Source: Paraphysomonas bandaiensis
Taxonomy: Eukaryota; Protista; Chrysophyceae
NCBI GenBank assembly: GCA_965644295.1
Contig: CBFFRP010000077.1
Coordinates: forward strand, 62,001-126,000
DNA: 64,000 nt
Reading direction: 5' to 3'
Shown: positions 7,512 to 63,125 of the stretch, piece after piece
Position numbering within the stretch: the stretch's first letter is position 1
Layout: every line of letters begins with the position of its first letter
Notes under the pieces: model-generated
The model's database searches: none
The model's input: the letters and a program-made list of their open reading frames with translations, nothing else
What the model was told of the DNA's origin: nothing
Translations under genes and position numbers: made by a program

Positions 7512-7960
7512 CCCTGAAGAAGGTCGGACTCGCACCTTTTCGTGTGGTGTTCGGGGAATAAATCATAGCTAAATGCTTGTGTGGTACAAGGGACACTACG
7601 TAGTAAGGAATAAACAGGCATCCGGGACAGGGCTCATCTGAAGGGCAACCGGGAATAGGCCGACCTGAAGGGTAACCGGGGTATTGGGCTGCCTGCTGAA
7701 GTCAAGCATCCGGGATGTTCACCTTAAGGACTCAAAAATCAGATGTCAGGTATATCAACATTTTGCTTGCTCACAGTTTTAGCTTTGAGTGATAGAGCGA
7801 AAGTGGTTGCACCTTGGTACTTGCGGTGACGCACAAGCAGCGTCCGTAGCGTTAAATTGTAGGATATCAGAGTTAAGCACTAGTTGGTTAAATTGCTTTT
7901 TGCTAAATTAGTTCTGACTCTTAAACGCCTATATTGCAAATAATAAGACATTCACTACTA
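7512..7960 (+). mobile_element. Ribozyme-headed SINE-like retroposon (family A), degenerate copy retaining the 46-nt intron-like segment
   Basis: Starts CCCTGAAGAAGGTCGGACTCGCACC, contains 27-bp GGGCATCCGGG repeats, and has a LINE-type tail ending AAGACATTCACTACTA. Confidence 0.85.
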
Positions 7961-19714: not shown

Positions 19715-20299
19715 AGTAAATGTCTTATTATTAGCAATAGGCGTGGAAGAGCCAGAACTAATGTAGCAAAGCAATTTAACTAACTAGTGCTTTACTCTGA
19801 TAGTAGTGAATGTCTTATTTAAGCAAAATAAGCGTTTAAGAGTCAATGCATAACTCTGATATCCTACTATTCAACGCTACGGAAGCTGCTTGTGCGTCAC
19901 CGCAAGCACCAATGTGCAATCACCTCCTCGCACCTTTTCGTGGTGTTCTGGGGGATAAGTACCAGAGATATTTCTCCGGGAAACTAATATGTAAGCCGCA
20001 TATATAGTCAGCAGATATTGTTTTGCCTACTCATAGCCAAATGCTTGTGTGGTAGAACGGACACTAATTAGTGTAACTTGTGTGGGCGTCTTTGGGCCTT
20101 GACGAATAAACAGGCATCCGGGAATGGACCCACATGCCCACATCAAGTTCATCCGGGGTATTGTGGGCTGCTTACTGAAGTCTAGCATCCGAGCTGTTCA
20201 CTCAAAAATGTTGTACTCAGCAGATGTCAGGTATGTCAACACTCTGTTTGCTCACGGCGTTTGCTTTGAGTGATAGAGAGCGTCCGACTTTGTTGAGGG
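19715..20299 (-). mobile_element. Family A retroposon copy with an internal inversion (19928-20281)
   Basis: The first 18 nt (CCCTCAACAAAGTCGGAC) are on the minus strand at 20282-20299 and the tail is on the minus strand at ~19715-19927. The body between them reads on the plus strand. Confidence 0.85.
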
Positions 20300-20590: not shown

Positions 20591-21009
20591 CCCTACAAAG
20601 TCGGACTCGCACCTTTTCGTGGTGTTCTGGGGGAAACTAATATGTGAGCCGCGTATATAGTCAGCAGATATTGTTTTGCCCACTCATAGCCAAATGCTTG
20701 TGTGGTAGAAAGGACACTAATTAGTGTAACTTGTGTGGGTGTCTTTGGGTCTTGACGAATAAACAGGCATCCGGGAATGGGCCCACATCAAGTTCATCCG
20801 GGGTATTGTGGGCTGCTTACTGAAGTCAAGCATTCGGGCTGTTCACCTTAAGGTCAGAGAGCGAAAATGGTTGCACCTTGGTGCTTGCGGCGACGCACAA
20901 GCAGCTTTTGTAGTAGGATATTAGAGTTAAGCACTAGTTAGTTAAATTGTATTGCTACATTAGTTCTGACTCTTACACGCCTATTGCTAATAATCAGACA
21001 TTCACTACT
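20591..21009 (+). mobile_element. Family A retroposon copy lacking the P4 hairpin and the intron-like segment
   Basis: Starts CCCTACAAAGTCGGACTCGC, has junctions GGGGGA|AACTAA (~20634) and GTCAG|AGAGCG (20857/20858), and its tail ends AGACATTCACTACT. Confidence 0.88.
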
Positions 21010-28772: not shown

Positions 28773-28906
28773 TACTGAACCCTTTAAATATCACACCCTT
28801 TAACTGAAAATTTGAATGAAAACAGAATATTCTGATTCTTAGCGACGACAAAGTATTTGATAGTATATATTATAATATTATGTATTTTATTATATAGTAG
28901 ATAACA

Positions 28907-28955
28907 TTATCCCCCAGAACACCACGAAGAGGTGCGAGTCTGACCTTGTTGAGGG
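28907..28955 (-). mobile_element. Family A head fragment (first ~50 nt)
   Basis: Reads CCCTCAACAAGGTCAGACTCGCACCTCTTCGTGGTGTTCTGGGGGATAA on the minus strand. Confidence 0.85.
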
Positions 28956-29002: not shown

Positions 29003-30187
29003 GTTGAACAGTTGAGTATTAAGAAGCGCAAGCTTGTGCGTTGCCGCGACCAGCCTAACAACTCGCGCGACACTATAAGCATAACAGAACTCTCATCTAG
29101 TTACTATTGCATGCACCGACAAGTGCTCAACTATACAACACGATTTAATTAGCTACATCATGGGCATACGACGAGTTGCGTGTTTAAGCCGGATCATACG
29201 CTCCTGTCCAATTTACTTGTCCTAACACAAACAACTTCCGGTCGGTGTCTTCAGCATATGTCTCCTGTATATGCGGCAGATCTTTAGGTTCCTCTTCAAG
29301 GTGGTGTTCACAGCAGCAGGTAGTCTGAAGGGGAGAGAACAGTAGAGTAGCTCTAGCGCCGGGTCCTCCCACGGTCACGAAGCGGTCTCACTGGTGTAAT
29401 TTTACCAAAATCTGTTATAAATTCAAGCTGACTCCAATGTCTTCCCTCCATTATGTGCACTCGTCTAGCACATGCATCCACCTTGCACTCTTCTCCAGAG
29501 TGACTTACGTTAGTAGGAAACCGTGCACCTTCTCCGCTCCGATAAAAATCTACTAAAAGTAAGAAACAACATAAAAGCACACAAAAATGTACCTGACACT
29601 GCTTGGAGAACAGTGCCAGAGCCTTGATATATTCTCAATGACCTGGGTCAGGAGAAACCAAGACTAGGCAGTAGACGTGCGAGAAGACATGACAGGTCTA
29701 ATCACATCATTGCCATTGCCACGCATTCATGTCTTACCTCGGTCGTTGGCCACACAGATACCGAATAATGTGAACGCATATACTCAGCATCAATCAGTCA
29801 AAGCAAACACAGTGAGCAAGCGGAATGTTAATATACCTGACATCTGCTGACTTCAGGTTTTTGAGCTCTTAAGGTGAACACCCGGATGCTTAACTTCAGC
29901 AGGCAGCCCAATACCCCGGTTACCCCTCAGGTGGGCCCTGTCCCGGATGCCCTTGAGGTGGGCCCATTCCCGGGTTCCTGTTTATTCGTCAGGGCCCAAA
30001 GACGTCTACACAAGTGACACTTATTAGTGTCCCTTTTGTACCACACAAGCATTCGGCTATATGAGTGGGCAGAACAATATCTTCTGACTATGTTTGCGGC
30101 TCACGTTAGTTTCCCAGAGAGAATCTCTCCGGTACTTATCCCCCAGAACACCACGAAAAGGTGCGAGTAGTCCGACTTTGTTGAGGG
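29003..30187 (-). mobile_element. Long family A retroposon (1185 bp) with ~0.8 kb cargo and a divergent tail
   Basis: Perfect 15-bp TSD CTCCGGTAGTACCCA at 28988-29002 and 30188-30202; the 5' end CCCTCAAC is at 30187. Confidence 0.93.
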
Positions 30188-31918
30188 CTCCGGTAGTACC
30201 CACGCTGATTAGAATAAACCTGCGCAACAGTCATTCAGTTTTCAATACATATAGTACATATACATCACAGCGTAAGAGGGCTATATTTTAGTAACGGAGG
30301 TATACTCTATTCTTATTCCTTAACTTATTATATATATATTATAGTGTGTGTAGAGATGTAGTATGCACGAGTACTGGAGAGAGGCCCTCTCCACGAGACA
30401 CGACGCGCACTTTGAGATTAGTCAGGCGTGTGACGCTCAGGATGCGAGCGGACCCAATTGATTTTCCTATTAGTCCACGTTGTTTTGGCCGTTGCGATGC
30501 TCTCCAGGAAGACGTACGAATACAATGGTATTTACATATAGCAGACGAGACTGCAAGGGGAGACTGGTTGGAGGTCGACCGTGGTTTAGGCCGTGACAAT
30601 TTTACACTCTCTGCGAAATCGATGTTGCAAGAGTTATGAAACGAATACTTACATCCGCAATATGGCAATGGCGTCTGTCCGGAACACGCCAATGATCACT
30701 AACTTCCAATCCCTTCGTGACCAGCGGACTCTAGAGAGTTTTACACTGCTCTACGCGACCAACTCTATGGTCATAATACCTGAACCGCGCGCCCGGATAC
30801 AGGAAGGACAGCGGCGTCTTACTTCCGCACAAACTGGCCCTCGCTGGTAGCGGCAGATCTAAGATCAAGAACACATCACACCTACGACAACGCATATACT
30901 CAATACAGCCTTGACATGGGACTAATCATACAGCAATGTATGGTAGAAATAGGGCCAAATTTTAAACAAAATTAGGACTTAACCTGAACAAAGCCAGATG
31001 CTCTAACTGCGGCTTTCGGCTTGACTCCCTCAAACATATGTGTCTTGATTACTGTCAGCACACCTCCATTTCTCAGGTACGAGAATCTGCCTTTTTCAGA
31101 GGCATACGGAAACTCCCAATTGATCCAACCCTTCCACCTTGGAGTTCTCCCATTCTAAAATACTATCTCGTAGAGCCTGGAGTACCTCACTTCCGCAGGT
31201 GTCGAACGATTTTGGACAGGAACCATTACTGAGACCCAAATGGAAAGCATCTTCGAAACACAGTACAATTGCTCTCTGTCAGTTCGCGTGGACTACGTAC
31301 CATAGATAATGCGGTTGTAACCCTTCTTCAATCGCTTTACACAAACAACAAATGCTTCATGATCGTAGTGGGCGTTATACTGCCCACACCTAAGGGGCCA
31401 CACCGCCTTCCCCCTAGAGACTGCGTCAGCGACGTGGACGCACACGAAGCAGCATAGGTAGTACAGCTCGGCCTAATCGGCAGCCTTCCCCCAGCATGCG
31501 CTCAACACGGCCTAAATCGAGCAACACCCTGCTGGGACCACGAGTTCTACGCTTACTACACGCGTCCCCTCAGCTGCCCTCCTCTTCCACCACCCCTTTC
31601 CCCGCAGAGAATTCAAGGGACGATGACGTCCCACTCCACCCCTTCGCACATGTATATCAGGTTAGGTACACTCGACTCACTAATTCAGAATCCTCACCCA
31701 CAAAGTCCTGAAGAACCCTATCCTAAGGGGCGTGCTCCTGACTGTTTCTTCTGTATTTTATGTACCACACAATGACCTAAAAATCCTATGATCCTTCTGT
31801 CTTTCATGGACTAATGCCCGCTGAGAGACTCTCCCTCACACACAAGAACGGAAGTGGTTGCATCTTGGGGCTTGCGGCGACGCATAAGCAGCTTCTGTAT
31901 CGTTAAATAGAATCAAGA

Positions 31919-32008
31919 CCCTCAACAAAGTCGGACTACTCGCACCTTTTCGTGGTGTTCTGGGGGATAAGTACCGGAGAGGTTCTCTCTGGGAAACTAA
32001 CGTGAGCC
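31919..32008 (+). ncRNA. Putative HDV-like self-cleaving ribozyme (L1Tc/ingi Pr77-like), representative copy
   Basis: Manual fold: P1 CCCUCAAC(31919-26)/GUU[CU]GGGGG(31957-66); P2 CUCGC(31939-43)/GUGAG(32002-06); P3 ACC/GGU around L3 UUUUCGU; P4 hairpin CCGGAGAG/CUCUCUGG framed by AGUA/GAA; J4/2 CUAA (31997-32000). Confidence 0.65.
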
Positions 32009-32430
32009 GCAAACATAGTCAGAAGATATTGTTCTGCCCACTCATAGCCGAATGCTTGTGTGGTACAAAAGGGACACTAATAAGTGTCACTTGTGTAGAC
32101 GTCTTTGGGCCCTGACGAATAAACAGGCATCCGGGAATGGGCCCACCTCAAGGGCATCCGGGACAGGGCCCACCTGAGGGGTAACCGGGGTATTGGGCTG
32201 CCTGCTGAAGTTAAGCATCCGGGTGTTCACCTTAAGAACTCAGAGCGGAAGTGGTCGCACCTTGGTGCTTGCGGCGACGCGCAAGCAGCTTTAGTAGCGT
32301 TCAATAGTAGAATAAAAAAGTGTGTACTGCTTAGTTACAGGTAGAGGTCTAACTAGTTTGTCTAGCATTCCTCTAGCTACTAAGTTGGTGCAGGTTTTTA
32401 ACGCCTATTGCTAATAATAAGACTTTCAAT
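31919..32430 (+). mobile_element. Full-length short family A retroposon inserted in a LINE 3' UTR
   Basis: CCCTCAAC start; tail ends AAGACTTTCAAT; degenerate TSD TAGAATCAAGA / TAGTAGCAAGA. Confidence 0.92.
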
Positions 32431-32828: not shown

Positions 32829-35473
32829 CTACATCCATTTGTTCTGTCTCACGAGCCTACAAAATGATTTTTGAGGTAAACTCCAAGTGGATTTTAGTGG
32901 GGTTGCATCTTGTTTGTTCAGTTGCACAAAATACCTGCATACACAAAATGATAACAATCGACTAATGAACAATGGCAATATCTTCACCTTGCCCCAGATA
33001 TCAGATCAAATTCTTCCACCCATTCTGGAGCTTCCCATCTGCTTTCTCCGGTAGTGGAGTTGTAATAGTATGGATAGCCGCTTTCGTCTAACTGTTCGTA
33101 CCACACGTCCACCGATGGACCGCTTCCCTTATTTGCCTCCTCTGTGGGGATAAAATCATAGTCCTCTCTAGCCGTTCCTCGATTGGTTGCACTGCCATCA
33201 ACAGCTTCCTCGGGTATAGGAGCACACTTCGGTTTCTTAATTGACTTAACGGAGACTGGAATGGGACGAAGAAACACATGGTCACGCTGGAGTCTGTCAT
33301 TCCATTCAGTGCGCACGGCCCAACCCCATGTAGCGTCCATCTCCTGGCTGCCGCGCTGGTTTGGAACACTGGCTTGGTCTGGAGAAGTTGTGTTCCAGTG
33401 CGCCAGCACTAGCACCCAACCACTCAATCGCTTCTTTGCGAGAATTTTATTCGCGGTAGAAATGTAACCTACAACAGGGGAGCGTTCCTTACTGGCTGCA
33501 CGGACTGGATGCACATATCGTCCTGTTCCAACATGAGAATCTGGGGGTATTAATTGGTACCACTTAGTCTCCCCTTCCTCGAACACTTCCTCCGTTTCCT
33601 TTTTTTTACCTTTCTCTTTTTCTTCGCTACCTAACTTGTTCTTTTGTATAGGCTTTCTCACCTGAGGATTAGCTTGACTTCTGAATCCTCTCCTAGGAAT
33701 TGAATCATGTGAATCCTCATAGTCATCCTCACCGTCACTCTCCACCCATTCATCGGGAATTATGTCATCATCACTCAATACTTCTTCAGGAAGAGAACTC
33801 GCCGATCCAAAACGCTTACCATACAACGAGGCACTGGTGTCATTGCGTGCAGACGACCCATGTGCCTGCCAGGTACGTCGGCCGGACTTACTATTCGACC
33901 CACATCTATTGCCATTGGGAGACGGCATAAATAATTCATCGTCTTCTTCCACTTCCTCCGCAACTGCGGAGTTAACGCGCTGGAGAGGGCGGTTTGTCTG
34001 TGGGAATATGGACTGCTTGTTCAAGGGTTTCGTCCCAGATGAATTCGACGGTGCGGATGATGTCGCTTTCTTGTTTTTCGGTATGCTATCACCACCACAG
34101 GTGGTAGTTTCTCTTTGAAGTGTGACACTCACAGGATCACACCAGGGACCCTTGCTTCCTATACACAAGCCAATACAATAAGTGAGCTATAGACGTAAAA
34201 ACAAACAGGACGTATTTATACCTCTTGTATTGTCAGTGGATGGCGGGATGAGGTGTCTAACTCTAAACTCATAGTAACGTCCAGGTAAAAGGTTCTTCTT
34301 AATCACCCTGTCCCCAGATATCATTACAGCCACAGCTTCCCACTCAGGTCCATCTCGCCAGCTCAACTCTGTCCGTAAGATTCCCGGGTCGATTTTATCG
34401 GACACGGAAGGAGGATTCCAATGAAGCTGCACAATTGTGGAGTCGAGGGGCGAGGCGGAGAGGCCGGTAGGGACAGGAAGAGAGATTGGCTGACGACTTG
34501 TCTTCGGTCGCCGCTCATTACCTCGATCGTTCTTTCTATCTTTCTCTTTTCCATGTTCTCTACTGTGCTCTCTCTTATATGAAGCATGTGGCTGTTTGCT
34601 CTCTGCTTTCTGGGCATGAATATTTGGACCATGACTGTAAGTCCTATGACCATAGCTAGTTTTGGCTCGTCGTTCCGCTGCCCTAGCCTCAGCTGCATCC
34701 ATCTCACGTTGCCGTGCTTCCATGCGTTCACGAGCATGTTTTTCTTCCTCTGTCTCACGCCGAGCACTTGACGAATTAGTTTTACAACCTTGGTTATTGT
34801 TCCCCTTATTGTGATGAGAGTTGGAAGAGGCCGTGGACTTCCGGCTTGAAGTTCCATCAGTATTTGAATGTCCTCTACATTCTTGACGGCTACTCTCTTG
34901 AGAAGGAGATTTTCTGGGTGCTTCGCTGGAATTATCACTTCTTGTAGTCGTTGATTTCGTCGCCGGTGGAGGGCCTGGTGGTTTGCTTGCGGCAGCAGCA
35001 GCTGCTGCCGCTGCTGCTTTTTGCCTAGCTTCCTCAGCCTTACGACTGGTTTCATTCGTGAGTTTTTCGTGCGCGCATTGAATGGCCTGAAAAAGGGGAG
35101 TCGTGCATGGATTTTTATCTGTACATGCATTTAATTTGGTTAACACCACTCCAAATATGCACCAGATATGCGTATTACCTGGGTGGTATTTGAGTGCGAG
35201 CTTCTTATAGGCCTTACGGACATCAATAGTCTGCGATCCAAGCGTAATATCAAGCGCCTCAAAAGGATAATTGGCTAAAAAATGAAGCCCTTGCTGAAGC
35301 AACTCTCCAGCATCAGTTGAACCGGAAGAATCTTCAGCTTGGTCTGATACAGATATGTCGCTCTTTAGCAGCAGTTCGACCCCGTCTCTCACATCCTGGC
35401 CTGTTTTCTTGCGAATCATAACAGCAGCACGCCTGAATTTGTCATGTGGGACGAATACAGATGGAGCGCTCAT
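32829..35473 (-). CDS. J-domain (DnaJ) + fibronectin type III + WW domain protein, ~4 exons
   Basis: VRKAYKKLALKYHP|DKN (HPD restored by splicing ~35122-35179), FN3-like VPTGLSA..VQLHW..NLLPGRYYEFRVR, WW-like WYEQLDESGYPYYYNSTTGESRWEAP. The last exon ends at 32829. Confidence 0.87.
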
Positions 35474-47575: not shown

Positions 47576-48820
47576 CAGGGTTGCGTAACAATTAATTGAA
47601 TTGCAATTACTTAATAATTGCAATTATAATTGCTCGCTGTAAAGTTGCAATTAAATTGCAATTATTAACTATATAGTATAAGAGCACATAATCTTAGAAT
47701 TAGAAGTTGCAAAACATTAAGGACGATGGCCATTTATTGCCCTTAATGGCTATTACAATAGTGGGAAGGTTGGCATCTCATTATCTTTACATTAAGAAAT
47801 GTACTGTTTTTTTGAGCGGTCGATTATGTCTCTTTCCTCTTGATTTTGAGCTACAAAACTCCCTCAACAAAGTCGGACTCGCACCTTTTCGTGGTGTTCT
47901 GGTGGATAAGTACCGGAGAGATTCTCTCTGGGAAACTAACGTGAGCCGCAAACATAGTCAGCAGATATTCTTCTGCCCACTCATAGCCGAATGCTTGTGT
48001 GGTACAAAAGGGACACTAATAAGTGTCACTTGTGTAGACGTCTTTGGGCCCTGACGAATAAACAGGCATCCGGGAATGGGCCCACTTCAAGGGCATCCGG
48101 GACAAGGCCCACCTGAAGGGTAACCGGGGTATTGGGCTGCCTGCTGAAGTCAAGCATCCGGGATGTTCACCTTAAGAACTCAGAGCGGAAGTGGTCGCAC
48201 CTTGGTGCTTGCGGCGACGCACAAGCAGCTTCCGTAGCGTTAAATAGTAGGATAAAAAAAGTGTGTACTGATTAGTTACAGGTAGAGGTCTAACTAGTTT
48301 GTCTAGCATTCATTTAGCTACTAAGTTGGTGCAGGTTTTTAACGCCTATTGCTAATAATAAGACTTTCAATATAAGACTTTCAATATATGAGCGACAAAA
48401 CTTAGTTCATCTCGATCCATAGTGTATATGTAATGCTCAATACCACTCTAGTTGAAGATATATATCTATATGTAGTGTGGCAATCATGTTCTTCCGATCC
48501 TGGACGCCTTACAGGACACTGTAGGGTTGAATTTCACTACGAACTGGATGTGCAGCGGTATGGACATGAATTATCAGGGCTATTAACTGTTTTTTTGCAG
48601 ACGAAAACCTAGATATTTAGAGATTTGACCATGTAAATGTCATACTCTGTCAATTATATCATCATACGGTTGAAGATGCTATATGAGTATTCAATGAGTA
48701 ACTAATTAGAAAATAATGGGCACAATTAAATTATAATTGCGCGAGCTATAACTAATAATTGCAATTTAATTGCAAAAAAACATTTGCAATTAAATTGCAA
48801 TTAATTGTTACGCAGACCTG
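47576..48820. mobile_element. Second non-autonomous hAT-like family (older), carrying a nested family A copy
   Basis: TIRs CAGGGTTGCGTAACAATTAATTG / CAATTAATTGTTACGCAGACCTG; degenerate 8-bp TSD CTAAAACC / CTAAGATC; subterminal ATTGCAATT repeats. Confidence 0.85.
47861..48388 (+). mobile_element. Full-length short family A retroposon (528 bp)
   Basis: 14-bp TSD TGAGCTACAAAACT (47847-47860) / TGAGCGACAAAACT (48389-48402). The tail ends in a duplicated AAGACTTTCAATAT(AT), like the LINE end at ~56830. Confidence 0.95.
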
Positions 48821-56828: not shown

Positions 56829-59299
56829 ATATATTGAAGGTCTTTTTATTTAGCAATAGGCGTTAAAAACTCGTTCCGATATAGTGGCTAGTTGAATGCT
56901 AGATCTACTAGTTAGACCTCTACCCATAACTAATCAGCACAAATTCTATTATCCTACTATTTAGCGCTACAGAAGCTGCTTGTGCGTCGCCGCAAGCACC
57001 AAGGTGCAACCACTTCCGTTCTTAAATGTTGTGTGTGAGTTCGCCCTGCTCGTGTGTCTGAGGACTCACTGGCGCGTGTTGTCCGGGGGTCTCCCCTTGG
57101 GATAAGGTTCCACCTGGCTCTGAGGTACAGGGTTCTGTATTAAGGTCCTGAGTGTACCGAGCACTAGATGTGTGTACTGAGAGGTTGATGGTGTGGTGGA
57201 ATGTGGCGGTGTCGCCATGCACCGTCCGGGCGTTGGGCATAGGTGGAGTTGCCGGAGACGTCGTCGCCGTTGTCTAGGGCCTGTTGGTTTCATACGGTCC
57301 GGTGCTATGGTCCTTTGTGTATGGTTGGTAGGGTTCATAGGTGCGGTGGGCGGTGTTCCAGTCTCGGTTCGTCTGTGGATTCCTAGTAATCTTAGCACCC
57401 TTGGGCGTTTCCGTTTCTGTCTGTGTTTTGGACGCGGCCGCGGTAGTAGCCTTGGGGGACCTTTCTGTAGGGTAACGTATCTTCTACTTCGATCTTGGAT
57501 CATTAGCTTTGCTGCAGCGAAAAGCGGTAGAAGTAATTTGATGATCGCTGATTCGATGCTGCGCAGTCCTTGGGATGTCAGTGACTCATGGATGTGATCT
57601 CCAAAAACCATTTCAAGCTGTGTAGTTGTGATGGTACCCGTCCAGAAACTCTCCACCTGTGGCACGGAAGGGTTCCAGGCCCTGCTGGAGAGCCGCTGGA
57701 GTACAGTGGTGGTCCATTGGGGTAGTTCCGGATTTCTCATTTCTTCTAGAAGTGCGTTTTTGTGGCTGTGAAATGCAGACTCCCTTATCTGCGTTATGTT
57801 GTCATTTGTACAGTCTAGACACATATGCTTGAGTGAGTCTAGTCTAAATCCGCAGTCAGAACATGCGGCTTTAGCCATGTCGAGTCCGTGTTTGGTTTTC
57901 GCCCGGTTTCTTCCTATGCTGAAGGATTTGTCCCATGTCAGTGCTGCATTGAGTACTCGCTGGCGCAGGTGGGAACTCACTTTGTCCTTTGATGGTCCAC
58001 CATCTGCTTGCGCCAGTTTGCGCGGAAGTAGTGCTCCGCTGTCTTTCCAGTATCCAGGAGCCCGGTCAGGATTGTGACCGTAGCGTTGGTCTCGGAGAGC
58101 TGTGTAGGCCTCCAGCGTCCGTTGATTACGGAGGGATTGGAAATCCGTGAGCAGGGGGCTGGTGCGATACGGCCGTCGTTCCCCAGTTAGACGCCAGTGC
58201 CATAAACCCTCGGTGAGTATTCTCTCAATGGCTTGGTCCACTTCTATGTTACAGACAGTGTAATTTTGTCGTCCGAGTAGTCTATCTACCTCAAGCCAGT
58301 CCTCTCCTGCTACTGCGTCGGCAATGTAAATTCCTTTGTCTTCATATGTCCATTCAGACTCATCAGAGGTACGTCGTTCGGGGTGTGATCGGACCCATGC
58401 TACTGTCCTTGTACAATCGTTGTTTGCTGCAATGCTTTCGAGCAGTACACCTTTGGCACGATGCCCCAGTGCCCGACGTCTGGTGGAAAGTGCTTTGTGT
58501 GTGCGTATGCAGACGGCCTTATAGTCCGTGTTTATCGGTATGTGTGATGGGAGTCGCGCAGACAGTATAAGCGCCACTGCTGCTCCCATGAGCTCGTATG
58601 CATACGGGCCAAGTCCAGGTACGTCGCTGAAGGGTGTCTTAATCGCAGTATTTTTGTCGTACCAGTCTTCCATTCATCCTCCGGGGGGAGCCAGACTGCC
58701 GCCGCTCCTCCATAATGTGCCCATCTTGTGCGTGGGTGTACATGCGAAATGCGGCGCGGGGATAGGGCTGTAGGCGTGTATGAGCCGTCCGTGAAGATTG
58801 CCTTATAGGTATCCGCGTTTACATCATCCAGTCCTAATGTGCGGATAATGTTGGTCAGGGTGTTGGTATCTTGAGGTTCCGGAATGTCGGGTTGGTGGAG
58901 TGTGATGCCAACCTCCGTACCCCATTCCCGTAGGCTTAAGGCAAAGTGGTGGTAGTTTGGGTACGGAGCGGTAGTCTGTGTTAGAAGAAAGTCCGCTGCG
59001 TCACCGGCATCCCCGCCTAGGATTATGGCGCGTTGTAGGGAGCCCCATTTTTGTTCTTGAGCGGAATCTAAGAAGCGTTTCATTCCAAGTCCATTATGCC
59101 TGAGAGAGAGGTAGATCATTCCGTGGGGTATCCAGGACTCAGGCTTAGTGCTTTCCTGTAAAGGGTTGCGCAGGTGGAATCGATGTCCTTGTAATATTGT
59201 AGGGGCCAAGAAGCCTTGGTGGCCTTGTAAAGTAGAGTGGGGATGATTTGGGTCTCTATAACCATGACTTTGCAACCCGCTGAGGCGTGCTTGATCCCA
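56829..59299 (-). mobile_element. 5'-truncated non-LTR retrotransposon (post-RT region, RNase H, CCHC finger, 3' UTR, (TA)n end)
   Basis: ORFs 58532-59275 and 57066-58673 (frameshift near 58680): IYLSLRHNGLG, AIFTDGS, YELMGA, NTDYKA, WVRSH..ADAVA and CSDC..HMCLDC. 14-bp TSD TACTTGTCATTATA at 54416-54429 and 59300-59313. Confidence 0.93.
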
Positions 59300-60503: not shown

Positions 60504-63125
60504 ATGCTCCCATGTCTCACCTTCCTACTTTTCCTACTACCATACACCACCCCAACCCCCTCCAGTAGAGACATATGGTCTCGTCTCCATCCTCATTGGG
60601 ATGAGTGGATAGAGATGTGGCCAGGGGTGGGCTACTGCCGCTATGGACAAAGCCTTATTGCAGACATCAATAGCGAAGTGTGTACTCGTAAGAGGTGTTT
60701 ACTATCGTGGAATGCATCGAGTTTGATCGATTTGGATAAGCTGATAGGTGAGGAGGATGTCGTTCATCACGATCATTTGCATCACTGCTATTTACCCACT
60801 GGGGGACAGAGTAGACATACGGGTAAAGGGTCTCCCCAGGTTAGCTTTGTGGTGACTGTGTATGCGGATGATATGACCTCTGCTATGTCTCTTTTGGAGC
60901 TATATCGTACTGCCTCTGAGGTTCTTAGCGGGGAGTTCGTTTTGGTGTTCGACGTTGGCAGTTCTAATATGCCAGTTACGTTGCGTCTTATCGAGTATCT
61001 GCAGCGCATGTTTAATGCAGATATAACTGTAATCGACCACGTTGAACCAAAGGGCTATCTGATGAGCGCGAACGAGGGAATGCGAGTTGCACGCGGTAAA
61101 TATGCATTGCTGCTGAGTAGTGATGTGATTGTACTACCTGGTTGGATCGCCCTTATGATGAAAACGATACTTTCGCATCCCTCCAAAGTTGGTATGGTCG
61201 GACCGCTGATTCTAAATCCTGAAGGAAAAGTACGCGAGGCTGGTGGGTTCTTTCTCCAAGGAGGAAAGCTACAACGAATGGGTATTGGGGAAGTGCCCAA
61301 GAGACTGCCCGTGCGCCACGCCAGTGTTGTCGACTACCTTTCCCCTGCATGTGTGCTCGTTGACCGTGATTTATTCCTGCACCTAGGCTTGTTTGATACG
61401 CAGTTTAACCCGGCCTTCTATGAAGACCTGGATGCCGCATTAACGTATCGGTCCTTTGGCTATACCCTTGTACTACAGTCGTTAGCTGTGGTGGTGCGCA
61501 CAGATTCATCATATTATGGACCATCTGAAACACAACGAAACCACATTATGCCCTTGCATAAGGAGTTGTTTGAAAAGAAGCACGCAAGCGTACTGGGATC
61601 TTTCTGTCCCGAGAGGCCGCCCACTTGCCCTCAACCAGTCAGTCCGAGCGAGAATCATGCTTTTAGTTCATTTATCCGACAGCCAAACAGAGTCCTGATT
61701 CTCGATATTGTCCCTCCAGAGCCTGACAAAGATGCTGGATCCATTCGTCTATCCGAAATGATTGGAATCCTTCAGGGGGCGGGATTTTCGATAACGTTTG
61801 AGCCTTTTTCTACTGGACGGCATCCAAGGTATGTCCTGAAGATGATTTCTGAAGGTGTCAGCTACTTGTACCCGAAAATAGTGCAAGGTGTTTCCAAATA
61901 CGCTCAAAAGTACGGGCCACGACAACCTCTGGAAGTATGCCCCTGGAAGTTAATTATTGCTAGTCGCCGTGATATCTTCTGGGCGAATGCACGACACTTA
62001 AAGCGCCTCTGCCCGCGCACACCTATCATATTCGACACAGTGGATGTACACTTCCTCAGAGAGATACGCAAGTTCGACCAGGAAAGGAATGCACTTCTCA
62101 CCACACTACAAACTAGTGAAAGACATGCTGCGTTAAGTCGTCTGATGCAGATGGAGTCAAAGCTGATTACAATGACCGACAGAGAGATTAATCTAATGAA
62201 GATTGCCAATATAACATACGTGGTGAGTGCCTCTGAATACGAGTTGATCCGTCAGAAAGCTCCAGAAGTGGATGTGCGGATTGTATCAAACATGTACCGC
62301 CCACCTGTCAAATTTCTATATAGTGACCCGGTAATGCGTAACGGGGCTATATTTGTGGGGTCCATGTGTCACCCTCCTAATGTGGGTGCTGTGGAGTTCA
62401 TCGTGGACGAGATTCTAAGTAACAAAACTTTTCCGTTTGGCTTCAAGATGCACATAGTTGTTTCTCGATCAGCGGAATGCCCAGATACGATTATTGAAAA
62501 GGCTGCAGCGCATCGACTAGTCGAGCTGCATAGAGATATCTCCAACGAGGCGCTAGCAGATTTGCATGAACGCGTCAAAGTATGCCTTGCGCCAGTTAAA
62601 TATGGTGCAGGGGTGAAAGGCAAGGTGAACTATGCACTGCTGCATGGAGTTCCTGTAATATCCACAGTCGTTGGGGCAGAAGGGATGTACTTAGTGGACG
62701 GAGATAGCGTTATGATTGCAGACTCAGGACACGAGTTCTACACATCGTTAATAAAATTATACAGTGATGTTGAGCTCTGGCAGAAACTTCGCGCTGGGGG
62801 ACTCAAGGTTATGCAGGAGCATTTCAGCGTAGATGTTGCTCGTCAAACGATACTTCAGAGCTTAAAAGATTTAAATATAGAAATGGACTCAAAATCATGG
62901 ATTTGCCCGTATCGATCCCAATGCCCGTCACTGTTAAAACACGGGGGATTGACGGTCTTTCACTCGAATAAACCAGATAAGTTGTATGTAGGCGAGCCGC
63001 CGAAAGAAAAGATTGAATTCTTTAAGCTAGAATATATGTACCCATGGATAGTGAATAGGACAGCTATAAATGCAAAGAAGCAGAAAAAGTCGATTAGTAG
63101 AGCACTGAGAGGCAATGGAATGTAG
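60504..63125 (+). CDS. Intronless bifunctional glycosyltransferase (GT2 + GT4-like) with signal peptide
   Basis: MLPCLTFLLFLL leader. GT2 motifs GYLMSANEG..ARGKYALLLSSD, VDYLSPAC and FNPAFYEDLD; GT4-like motifs PEPDKDAGSIR, IFDTVDVHFLRE, FVGSMCHPPN and APVKYGAGVKGKV. Confidence 0.9.
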   Translation: MLPCLTFLLFLLPYTTPTPSSRDIWSRLHPHWDEWIEMWPGVGYCRYGQSLIADINSEVCTRKRCLLSWNASSLIDLDKLIGEEDVVHHDHLHHCYLPTGGQSRHTGKGSPQVSFVVTVYADDMTSAMSLLELYRTASEVLSGEFVLVFDVGSSNMPVTLRLIEYLQRMFNADITVIDHVEPKGYLMSANEGMRVARGKYALLLSSDVIVLPGWIALMMKTILSHPSKVGMVGPLILNPEGKVREAGGFFLQGGKLQRMGIGEVPKRLPVRHASVVDYLSPACVLVDRDLFLHLGLFDTQFNPAFYEDLDAALTYRSFGYTLVLQSLAVVVRTDSSYYGPSETQRNHIMPLHKELFEKKHASVLGSFCPERPPTCPQPVSPSENHAFSSFIRQPNRVLILDIVPPEPDKDAGSIRLSEMIGILQGAGFSITFEPFSTGRHPRYVLKMISEGVSYLYPKIVQGVSKYAQKYGPRQPLEVCPWKLIIASRRDIFWANARHLKRLCPRTPIIFDTVDVHFLREIRKFDQERNALLTTLQTSERHAALSRLMQMESKLITMTDREINLMKIANITYVVSASEYELIRQKAPEVDVRIVSNMYRPPVKFLYSDPVMRNGAIFVGSMCHPPNVGAVEFIVDEILSNKTFPFGFKMHIVVSRSAECPDTIIEKAAAHRLVELHRDISNEALADLHERVKVCLAPVKYGAGVKGKVNYALLHGVPVISTVVGAEGMYLVDGDSVMIADSGHEFYTSLIKLYSDVELWQKLRAGGLKVMQEHFSVDVARQTILQSLKDLNIEMDSKSWICPYRSQCPSLLKHGGLTVFHSNKPDKLYVGEPPKEKIEFFKLEYMYPWIVNRTAINAKKQKKSISRALRGNGM

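Follow-up and report, generated by a model that had tools for sequence, protein, structure and literature searches.

A probable hepatitis delta virus-like ribozyme heading a LINE-tailed, apparently chimeric retroposon family in the protist Paraphysomonas bandaiensis

How does a short, non-coding, dispersed repeat come to begin at the same nucleotide in copy after copy, when its tail matches the 3′ end of a retrotransposon that lacks its head? This question is raised by positions 31919–32430 of a 64,000-nucleotide (nt) stretch of Paraphysomonas bandaiensis DNA (assembly GCA_965644295.1, contig CBFFRP010000077.1, forward-strand positions 62,001 to 126,000), referred to below as the window; the assembly that holds it comprises 62.5 Mb in 669 contigs. 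An initial sequence-only reading of the window proposed that the repeat is a chimera, with a 5′ head resembling the hepatitis delta virus (HDV)-like ribozyme of trypanosome L1Tc elements (L1TcRz, or Pr77) and a tail borrowed from a long interspersed nuclear element (LINE). Our analysis supports that interpretation as a prediction. We think it fairly probable that the family is a ribozyme-headed, LINE-tailed chimeric non-autonomous retroposon of the non-long-terminal-repeat type, whose first ~90 nt self-cleave 5′ of the first cytosine (C1) and whose tail recruits a LINE reverse transcriptase (RT). In this model, transcripts containing a copy would fold their first ~90 nt into a double pseudoknot of the L1TcRz/Pr77 type, and this fold would cut the RNA immediately 5′ of C1, giving the same RNA 5′ end whatever lies upstream. 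The ~190-nt tail, a copy of the 3′ untranslated region (UTR) of a giant SET-APE-RT LINE, would recruit the LINE enzyme for target-primed reverse transcription, the outcome being full-length insertions flanked by target-site duplications (TSDs) of 10–15 bp.

The repeat is abundant and its 5′ end is precise. Over its full length, 31919–32430 is 94% identical to copies on other contigs, and a blastn search with 31859–32430 recovered the nine window copies that had been proposed, with 5′ ends at 7512 (+), 20299 (−), 20591 (+), 28955 (−), 30187 (−), 31919 (+), 38958 (+), 47861 (+) and 48857 (+). The starting motif CCCTCAAC was seen nine times in the window against 1.1 expected. Genome-wide, the first 102 nt of the element gave 1822 first-look candidates, and the head 23-mer GTGGTGTTCTGGGGGATAAGTAC, with at most one mismatch, has 850 sites (reversed control, 0). 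The common 5′ end also holds outside the window: all 30 loci taken from other contigs start exactly at CCCTCAAC, at the same C, and are preceded by unrelated DNA. Three length classes have this head in common, with copies of ~485–512 nt (family A, one internal 27-nt repeat of difference) and a 1.27-kb family B. The latter is non-coding, with no open frame longer than 128 codons, and its first ~320 nt (head included) and last ~65 nt are common to family A. At least 40 genomic copies of family B share 99–100% identity, a sign of a very young family with probable activity in the very recent past.

The flanks of the copies record their insertion. Of 14 distinct full-length copies, 11 have TSDs of 10–15 bp directly next to the first C. 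Clear duplications of 14–15 bp had been reported for two window copies; in the window, the copy at 47861 has a 14-bp TSD (one mismatch) and the copy at 20299 one of ~11 bp. The index copy at 31919–32430 has no recognisable TSD and is flanked on both sides by fragments of other tails. Two copies on other contigs (L006 and L012) sit inside older heads, into which their TSDs prove them to have been inserted. These independent young insertions (L006:1600–1641 and L012:1600–1639 (−)) both fall at positions 40–42 of the older heads, between GTGTTCT and GG, a shared point that may reflect a target preference of the LINE endonuclease or chance. Separately, the terminal 14 nt of the tail of the copy at 47861 (ATAAGACTTTCAAT) stand in tandem duplicate at its 3′ end (48358–48385), which is consistent with slippage as reverse transcription begins.

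The head had been read as following the HDV order of paired (P), joining (J) and loop (L) segments, and every element of P1-P2-P3-L3-P3′-P1′-J1/4-P4-J4/2-P2′ is indeed there, C31997 being the C of ACUAA. In the dominant genomic form, P1 would pair C1–C5(A6) with (U40)G41–G45, J1/2 is AAAGU, P2 would pair CGG-A-CUCGC with GUGAG-CCG, P4 is a predicted 7-bp hairpin and J4/2 is C76-U-A-A. Compared with this form, the P2 5′ strand is longer by an insertion of 3 nt (ACT/TAC) in the index copy and in its neighbour at 30187. The active-site residues are kept in sequence: L3 has the U...G, CUAA supplies the candidate for the catalytic C, and position +1 is a C, like that of L1TcRz. P3 does not vary among the relatives, nor does CUAA, which is also present in the published L1Tco and TbSIDER1 heads. 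The P2 duplex of the dominant head is computed at −11.0 kcal/mol (p 0.02 against shuffles). One older copy carries a head variant (20591–20660, +) without any J1/4 or P4, the latter being the dispensable domain of HDV ribozymes.

The likeness to L1Tc extends beyond the order of the segments. The proposed L1Tc/Pr77 skeleton was borne out by the Trypanosoma congolense L1Tco (CTCTGGCGCAGCCGGCCACCTCAACGTGGTGCCAGGGTCCAGTAC...GGAAGCTAAG) and T. brucei SIDER1 heads (PMC4035085), the published trypanosomatid heads being compared by a typed pattern in IUPAC (International Union of Pure and Applied Chemistry) code and by eye only. This core pattern, ACCTNNNNGTGGTGN{2,6}GGGNNNNGTACN{10,40}GGARNCTAA, has 25 specified bases and leaves P1 and P2 unspecified. 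It matches three window heads, where no match is expected by chance, and all 30 head loci, and in this respect the head resembles the 77–79-nt Pr77 hallmark.

A GTGGYG variant of the pattern led to 11 metagenome contigs (L065–L075) that carry what appear to be canonical HDV-like ribozymes with the L1Tc-type core ACCU..CGUGGUG / AGUAC..GGAA.CUAA. A perfect 7-nt P1 complement lies upstream in nine of them (6/7 and 5/7 in the other two), and the P2 duplex, different in sequence in each, beats shuffles in nine of ten relatives, the exception being L067. In two pairs of related contigs with different contexts, similarity is limited to the ribozyme and begins at the predicted cleavage site; conservation so confined to the ribozyme module suggests that the RNA fold itself is seen by selection. 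Open reading frames beside the environmental ribozymes gave no APE or RT match in Pfam, only a Ulp1-like frame, Ist1 and a Tc1/mariner transposase (one contig). None of these relatives reaches an Rfam threshold, the best model being RF02682, with which L070 and L069 align end to end at 22–23 bits (threshold 44). This suggests that current models miss a whole subclass.

From these sequences we built a covariance model (R1), using four environmental ribozymes only because MAFFT misaligned the P1 5′ strand when given all ten; the rest were aligned by Infernal. R1 finds the other six environmental ribozymes at 39–71 bits, and it recovers all intact heads of the window and of the head loci with scores of 18–28 bits (E 2e-4 to 0.05); 175 kb of LINE and control loci gave no other match. 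Its position 1 falls on element base 1 (31919, for example), which is both the predicted cleavage site and the TSD-defined 5′ end. Across the class, in an alignment that favours the structure in being fitted to the model, 94.9% of cells are paired (shuffles, 81.4 ± 1.5%, with 0 of 500 reaching the observed value). At seven pairs both partners have changed in a compensatory way, and the covariation score of 0.391 exceeds the 0.171 of shuffles and the scores of slid controls, none of which is above 0.084. Throughout the class, covariation is seen in P1, P2 and P4 as well as at the lone P1.1 pair. At P1.1 (third L3 base with first J1/4 base), the covariation suspected earlier was found again: the pair reads U-A here and in the majority of relatives, whereas L074 has G-C and the published trypanosomatid heads have A-U. 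Within the genome, one P4 pair is G-C, G.U or A-U according to subfamily.

Several points weigh against a self-cleaving head. Cleavage is predicted from sequence alone, and a 5′ end this precise could just as well result from transcription starting at +1. The P1 3′ strand has 10 nt, against 7 nt directly after P3 in ten of ten environmental relatives and in the published trypanosomatid heads, and the head lacks a continuous ~7-bp P1 with its 3′ strand in that position. The P1 3′ strand (GUUCUGGGGG) can be read in two ways, either as 6 contiguous bp next to the cleavage site with GUU(C), an insertion of 3–4 nt, following P3, or as a helix of 8 bp interrupted by a CU bulge; in other HDV-like ribozymes, P1 defects are tied to lost in-vitro cleavage (PMC3774820). 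P2 is weakened in the index copy, whose duplex with the insertion is computed at −7.8 kcal/mol (p 0.15). The nested minimum-free-energy fold of the head is no better than shuffles (z −0.19), a calculation that was not informative, as a pseudoknot would lead one to expect, and the Rfam HDV-like models do not match the head at the gathering threshold, at E ≤ 10 or at E ≤ 5. Finally, the element has a summed depth of 149–545 in poly(A) metatranscriptome contigs against 2–16 in its flanks, which counts in favour of our model, but the sum pools more than 850 copies and so says little of per-copy expression, and these RNA data are assembled contigs in which RNA 5′ ends are not visible.

Such points could be accommodated if the head were an internal promoter or initiator only. 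Transcription would then start from C1, and the HDV-like fold would survive as an inactive relic, its P1 damaged by the insertion. Pr77 is described in PMC3383444 and PMC3185411 as both promoter and ribozyme, with initiation at the same nucleotide, and this alternative would be in keeping with a P1 unlike that of all relatives, with the fact that P1 mismatches can abolish in-vitro cleavage, and with the failure of the Rfam HDV models to match. We nevertheless consider it unlikely. All active-site residues and four helices are kept in a currently active family, and two environmental families conserve just the ribozyme module; moreover, the longer P1 3′ strand of the element heads goes with a longer J1/2, which seems to compensate for it. 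We prefer a head that would self-cleave in vivo, and that may in addition have a promoter role.

The other end of the element points to its presumed partner. The match of the tail to a LINE 3′ UTR, put forward from the window, was upheld: element positions 324–512 (~190 nt) match, with window positions 56833–57022 among the matching sites. Elements end ...AAGACTTTCAAT(AT), and poly(A) is absent. The tail is 82–83% identical to the 3′ UTRs of one LINE family and 86.7% to those of another, the mutual identity of the two families being 69–72%. Among the LINEs and the subfamilies of this short interspersed nuclear element (SINE)-like repeat, the opening ~60 nt of the tail show conservation of 90% or more and are predicted to form a multi-stem (three-stem) fold; this conserved start is likely a binding element for the reverse transcriptase, and the tail as a whole is presumed to serve recognition by that enzyme, which the element would use. 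The same start (…CGGAAGTGGTTGCACCTTGGTGCTTGCGGCGACGCACAAGCAGC…) is seen at window positions 32242–32300, 31845–31910 and 56960–57022, in LINE families otherwise ~70% identical. Older copies of the element end ...GACATTCACT, as in LINE family 2, and young ones ...CAAT(AT), as in family 1, so the head has been joined to more than one tail.

The partner LINE has SET, APE and RT domains. Its earlier label as an RNase H LINE was not confirmed: a Pfam search of the final 535 residues, with the cut-off relaxed to E ≤ 1, gave no RNase H match. The giant LINE is ~8.7 kb long, with a single SET-APE-RT frame of ~2820 codons, an 11-bp TSD and a 5′ UTR of only ~15 nt (L059/L060 = G000:C433:105800–119000; L055 = C146), which raises the question of its own transcription and 5′-end definition. 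The family-2 copy at L059/L060 has the TSD CCTTGTGGCTT on both sides and is headless; its 5′ end lies 15 nt upstream of the ATG in an open frame that measures 2823 codons from stop to stop. In family 1, the starts of two copies fall no more than ~20 nt from the corresponding position. Whether a full-length LINE carries the head had been named as the test of the chimera; the sole TSD-bounded full-length partner LINE at hand does not, and because of this the element looks chimeric. The LINE 5′ regions checked for the head are those of the two giant LINE families. Two candidates for additional LINE sequence were rejected: a head 4.5 kb upstream of the LINE on C143 is a separate diverged copy of the SINE-like element, and the long frame that precedes the LINE in C433 is a gene with PT repeats, not LINE sequence.

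A further alternative is that the element is no chimera, and is instead an internally deleted derivative, comparable to short internally deleted elements (SIDEs) or NARTc, of an autonomous head-bearing LINE in unsampled parts of the genome. NARTc, RIME, SIDER and the R2 SIDEs all derive from head-bearing LINEs, and at least two more LINE-like RT families (RT matches of 834–840 nt, frames to 3731 amino acids) lie outside the examined set. Even so, we judge this explanation to be quite improbable. The LINE family with the closest tail is the very one with the headless TSD-bounded copy, and the two sister-family copies begin at nearly the same point. No head lies upstream of RT or LINE matches among the 100 head sites listed, R1 finds no ribozyme in 13 LINE loci or in three related ENA LINE contigs, and a whole-genome R1 scan gave no canonical, higher-scoring version (best 33–35 bits). 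A chimera of head and borrowed tail is the interpretation that we retain. That the HDV likeness is chance or low complexity in a 5′ region devoid of RNA-level function is very hard to credit, despite a nested fold energy equal to that of shuffles and the missing Rfam match, given a 25-base core pattern with no chance matches expected, an independent model that recovers all heads and nothing else, and a predicted cleavage site that coincides with the TSD-defined 5′ end in a structure where P1.1, P2 and P4 covary.

The host, earlier called a non-trypanosome protist, lies outside the kinetoplastids, as its GT-AG introns, its silicon transporters and the lack of a paraflagellar rod protein indicate. 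Two GT-AG introns of 53 and 63 nt (32933–32985 and 34158–34220) in a minus-strand gene at 32.7–34.4 kb are spliced in RNA contigs of four runs. Silicon-transporter genes number at least seven in the genome (L063, L064 and five other sites). A genome search gave no match to light-harvesting chlorophyll-binding proteins and none to paraflagellar-rod proteins, and the sequencing runs containing the DNA of this genome are marine. Together this suggests a silicifying, non-photosynthetic marine protist. The coordinates of the features described here are collected in Table 1.

Table 1. Features of the index copy, other copies in the window, the partner LINE and examples of environmental relatives (positions in the window unless a contig is given).
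Feature	Position	Strand	Remarks
Index copy, retroposon family A (~485–512 nt)	31919–32430	+	Candidate ribozyme head, ~230-nt body (27–37-nt internal repeats), LINE-derived tail
P1 5′ strand CCCUCAAC	31919–31926	+	C1–C5 pair G41–G45 (dominant numbering); predicted cleavage site just 5′ of C31919
P2 5′ strand CGGACUACUCGC	31932–31943	+	3-nt insertion here; dominant form CGGACUCGC
P3 (ACC/GGU) around L3 (UUUUCGU)	31944–31956	+	Third L3 base U pairs A31967 (P1.1)
P1 3′ strand GUUCUGGGGG	31957–31966	+	10 nt; 7 nt in all relatives
J1/4 (AUA), AGUAC...GGAA base of P4, P4 hairpin	31967–31996	+	
J4/2 CUAA	31997–32000	+	C31997 candidate catalytic cytosine; C-N-A-A as HDV C75-G-A-A
P2 3′ strand CGUGAGCCG	32001–32009	+	Duplex tested against shuffles
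Tail copied from LINE 3′ UTR	32242–32430	+	End ...AAGACTTTCAAT, no poly(A)
Full-length family A copy, dominant head	47861–48385	+	14-bp TSD TGAGCTACAAAACT / TGAGCGACAAAACT; terminal 14 nt duplicated
Family B copy, ~1.2 kb, non-coding	29003–30187	−	blastn; another family B copy at L004:335–1599 (−)
5′ fragment, 5′ end intact, 93% identity	38958–39139	+	blastn, model R1
Older diverged copy, 86% identity	48857–49127	+	Head still found by model R1 (28.3 bits)
Older copy, head without J1/4 and P4 (GGGGG joined to AAACTAA)	20591–21006	+	Tail end ...GACATTCACT, as LINE family 2
Older copy, ~11-bp TSD	19715–20299	−	Interrupted by a + strand head fragment at 19923–20133
Old internally deleted copy, 5′ end intact	7512–7956	+	Family-2-type tail
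Head-only fragment, ~50–80 nt	28873–28955	−	blastn, model R1
3′ end of 5′-truncated giant LINE	56829–58673	−	Last 535 codons 57066–58673, 3′ UTR 56829–57026; tail source type
Environmental candidate ribozyme, example	L070:127–207	+	
Environmental candidate ribozyme, example	L074:1770–1856	−	
Environmental candidate ribozyme, example	L075:1037–1137	−	
Environmental candidate ribozyme, example	L066:4730–4816	+	

In searching the literature, we found no report of an L1Tc/Pr77-type HDV-like ribozyme as a widespread 5′-end device of retroposons beyond kinetoplastids. If the head cleaves, ribozymes of this type would be no kinetoplastid peculiarity and would offer retroposons a widespread way to set their 5′ ends. 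A family so young and so abundant would then be a natural system for studying the mobilisation, by way of borrowed tails, of a head that lacks a LINE of its own, and the P3/P1 junction, expanded by 3 nt, would probe the tolerance of the HDV fold at that place. More speculatively, the L1Tc/Pr77-type module might be a portable cassette of ribozyme plus initiator that moves between unrelated retroelements and across eukaryotic supergroups, captured here without its own LINE and combined with tails from two or more LINE lineages, with the extended P1 and J1/2 forming an active new architectural variant of HDV ribozymes; we regard this wider proposal as doubtful.

Comparison with known systems places the element among several that it partly resembles. 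L1TcRz cleaves in vitro at C1 and has a CCC/GGG base of P1, a 3-bp P3 and a one-pair P1.1 (PMC3185411). Like L1TcRz/Pr77 in ingi, L1Tc, NARTc, RIME and SIDER (PMC3185411, PMC4035085), the element would have an HDV-like ribozyme in its first ~80–90 nt, starting with C and with CCC/GGG at the P1 base, and it has in common with them the ACC/GGU of P3, a 7-nt L3 ending in CGU, the one-pair P1.1, the AGUAC...GGAA base of P4 and the CUAA of J4/2. In both cases the module heads abundant short non-autonomous retroposons. The element differs in its non-kinetoplastid host, in its P1 3′ strand (10 nt against 7), in its longer J1/2, in lacking a poly(A) tail and in taking its tail from a headless SET-APE-RT LINE, and its cleavage and promoter activities are predictions. 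Its head does not stand at the 5′ end of a kinetoplastid ingi-clade APE-RT-RNase H LINE or a derivative of one.

A related solution is seen in bacteria. The consensus core of Rfam RF02682 (drz-Fpra of Faecalibacterium prausnitzii), aCCUCUaCGUGGuG ... GCUAAGA, is the same active-site solution, although drz-Fpra is bacterial and has no link to retroelements, and the element head itself gives no RF02682 match. Because this consensus and the 11 metagenome contigs carry the core, the Pr77 skeleton is not exclusive to Pr77, and convergence of the active site is documented for HDV-like ribozymes (PMC3774820). We would assign the head to the same structural subclass as L1TcRz on the likeness of its core, which is a separate matter from established descent from Pr77.

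As a retroposon, the element resembles canonical SINEs in being short, abundant and non-coding, with TSDs and a 3′ end common to an autonomous LINE of the same genome, which are the features of SINEs and SIDEs in the broad sense. Unlike canonical SINEs, it has no RNA polymerase III head derived from tRNA, 7SL or 5S RNA, and no A and B boxes. The earlier remark that tRNA A and B boxes are lacking agrees with ARAGORN, which found no tRNA gene in the window, and with Rfam, which gave no small-RNA match there at the gathering threshold. The closest parallel in strategy is provided by the R2 and R2/R1-hybrid SIDEs of Drosophila, in which a 5′ HDV-like ribozyme makes the 5′ end and a LINE 3′ end serves reverse transcription (PMC3414825, PMC3774820), the hybrids taking head and tail from different LINEs. 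Those elements insert site-specifically in ribosomal DNA, are not numerous and stem from LINEs known to bear the head, whereas the present element is dispersed, has at least 850 copies and comes with no head-bearing LINE that we could find. The strategy was thus already known from NARTc, RIME and SIDER and from the R2 and R2/R1 SIDEs, and it is its known range that is widened here. New in this case are the lineage of the host, the expanded P1 and the apparent lack of any LINE that bears the head, together with a previously unrecognised environmental subclass with the same core.

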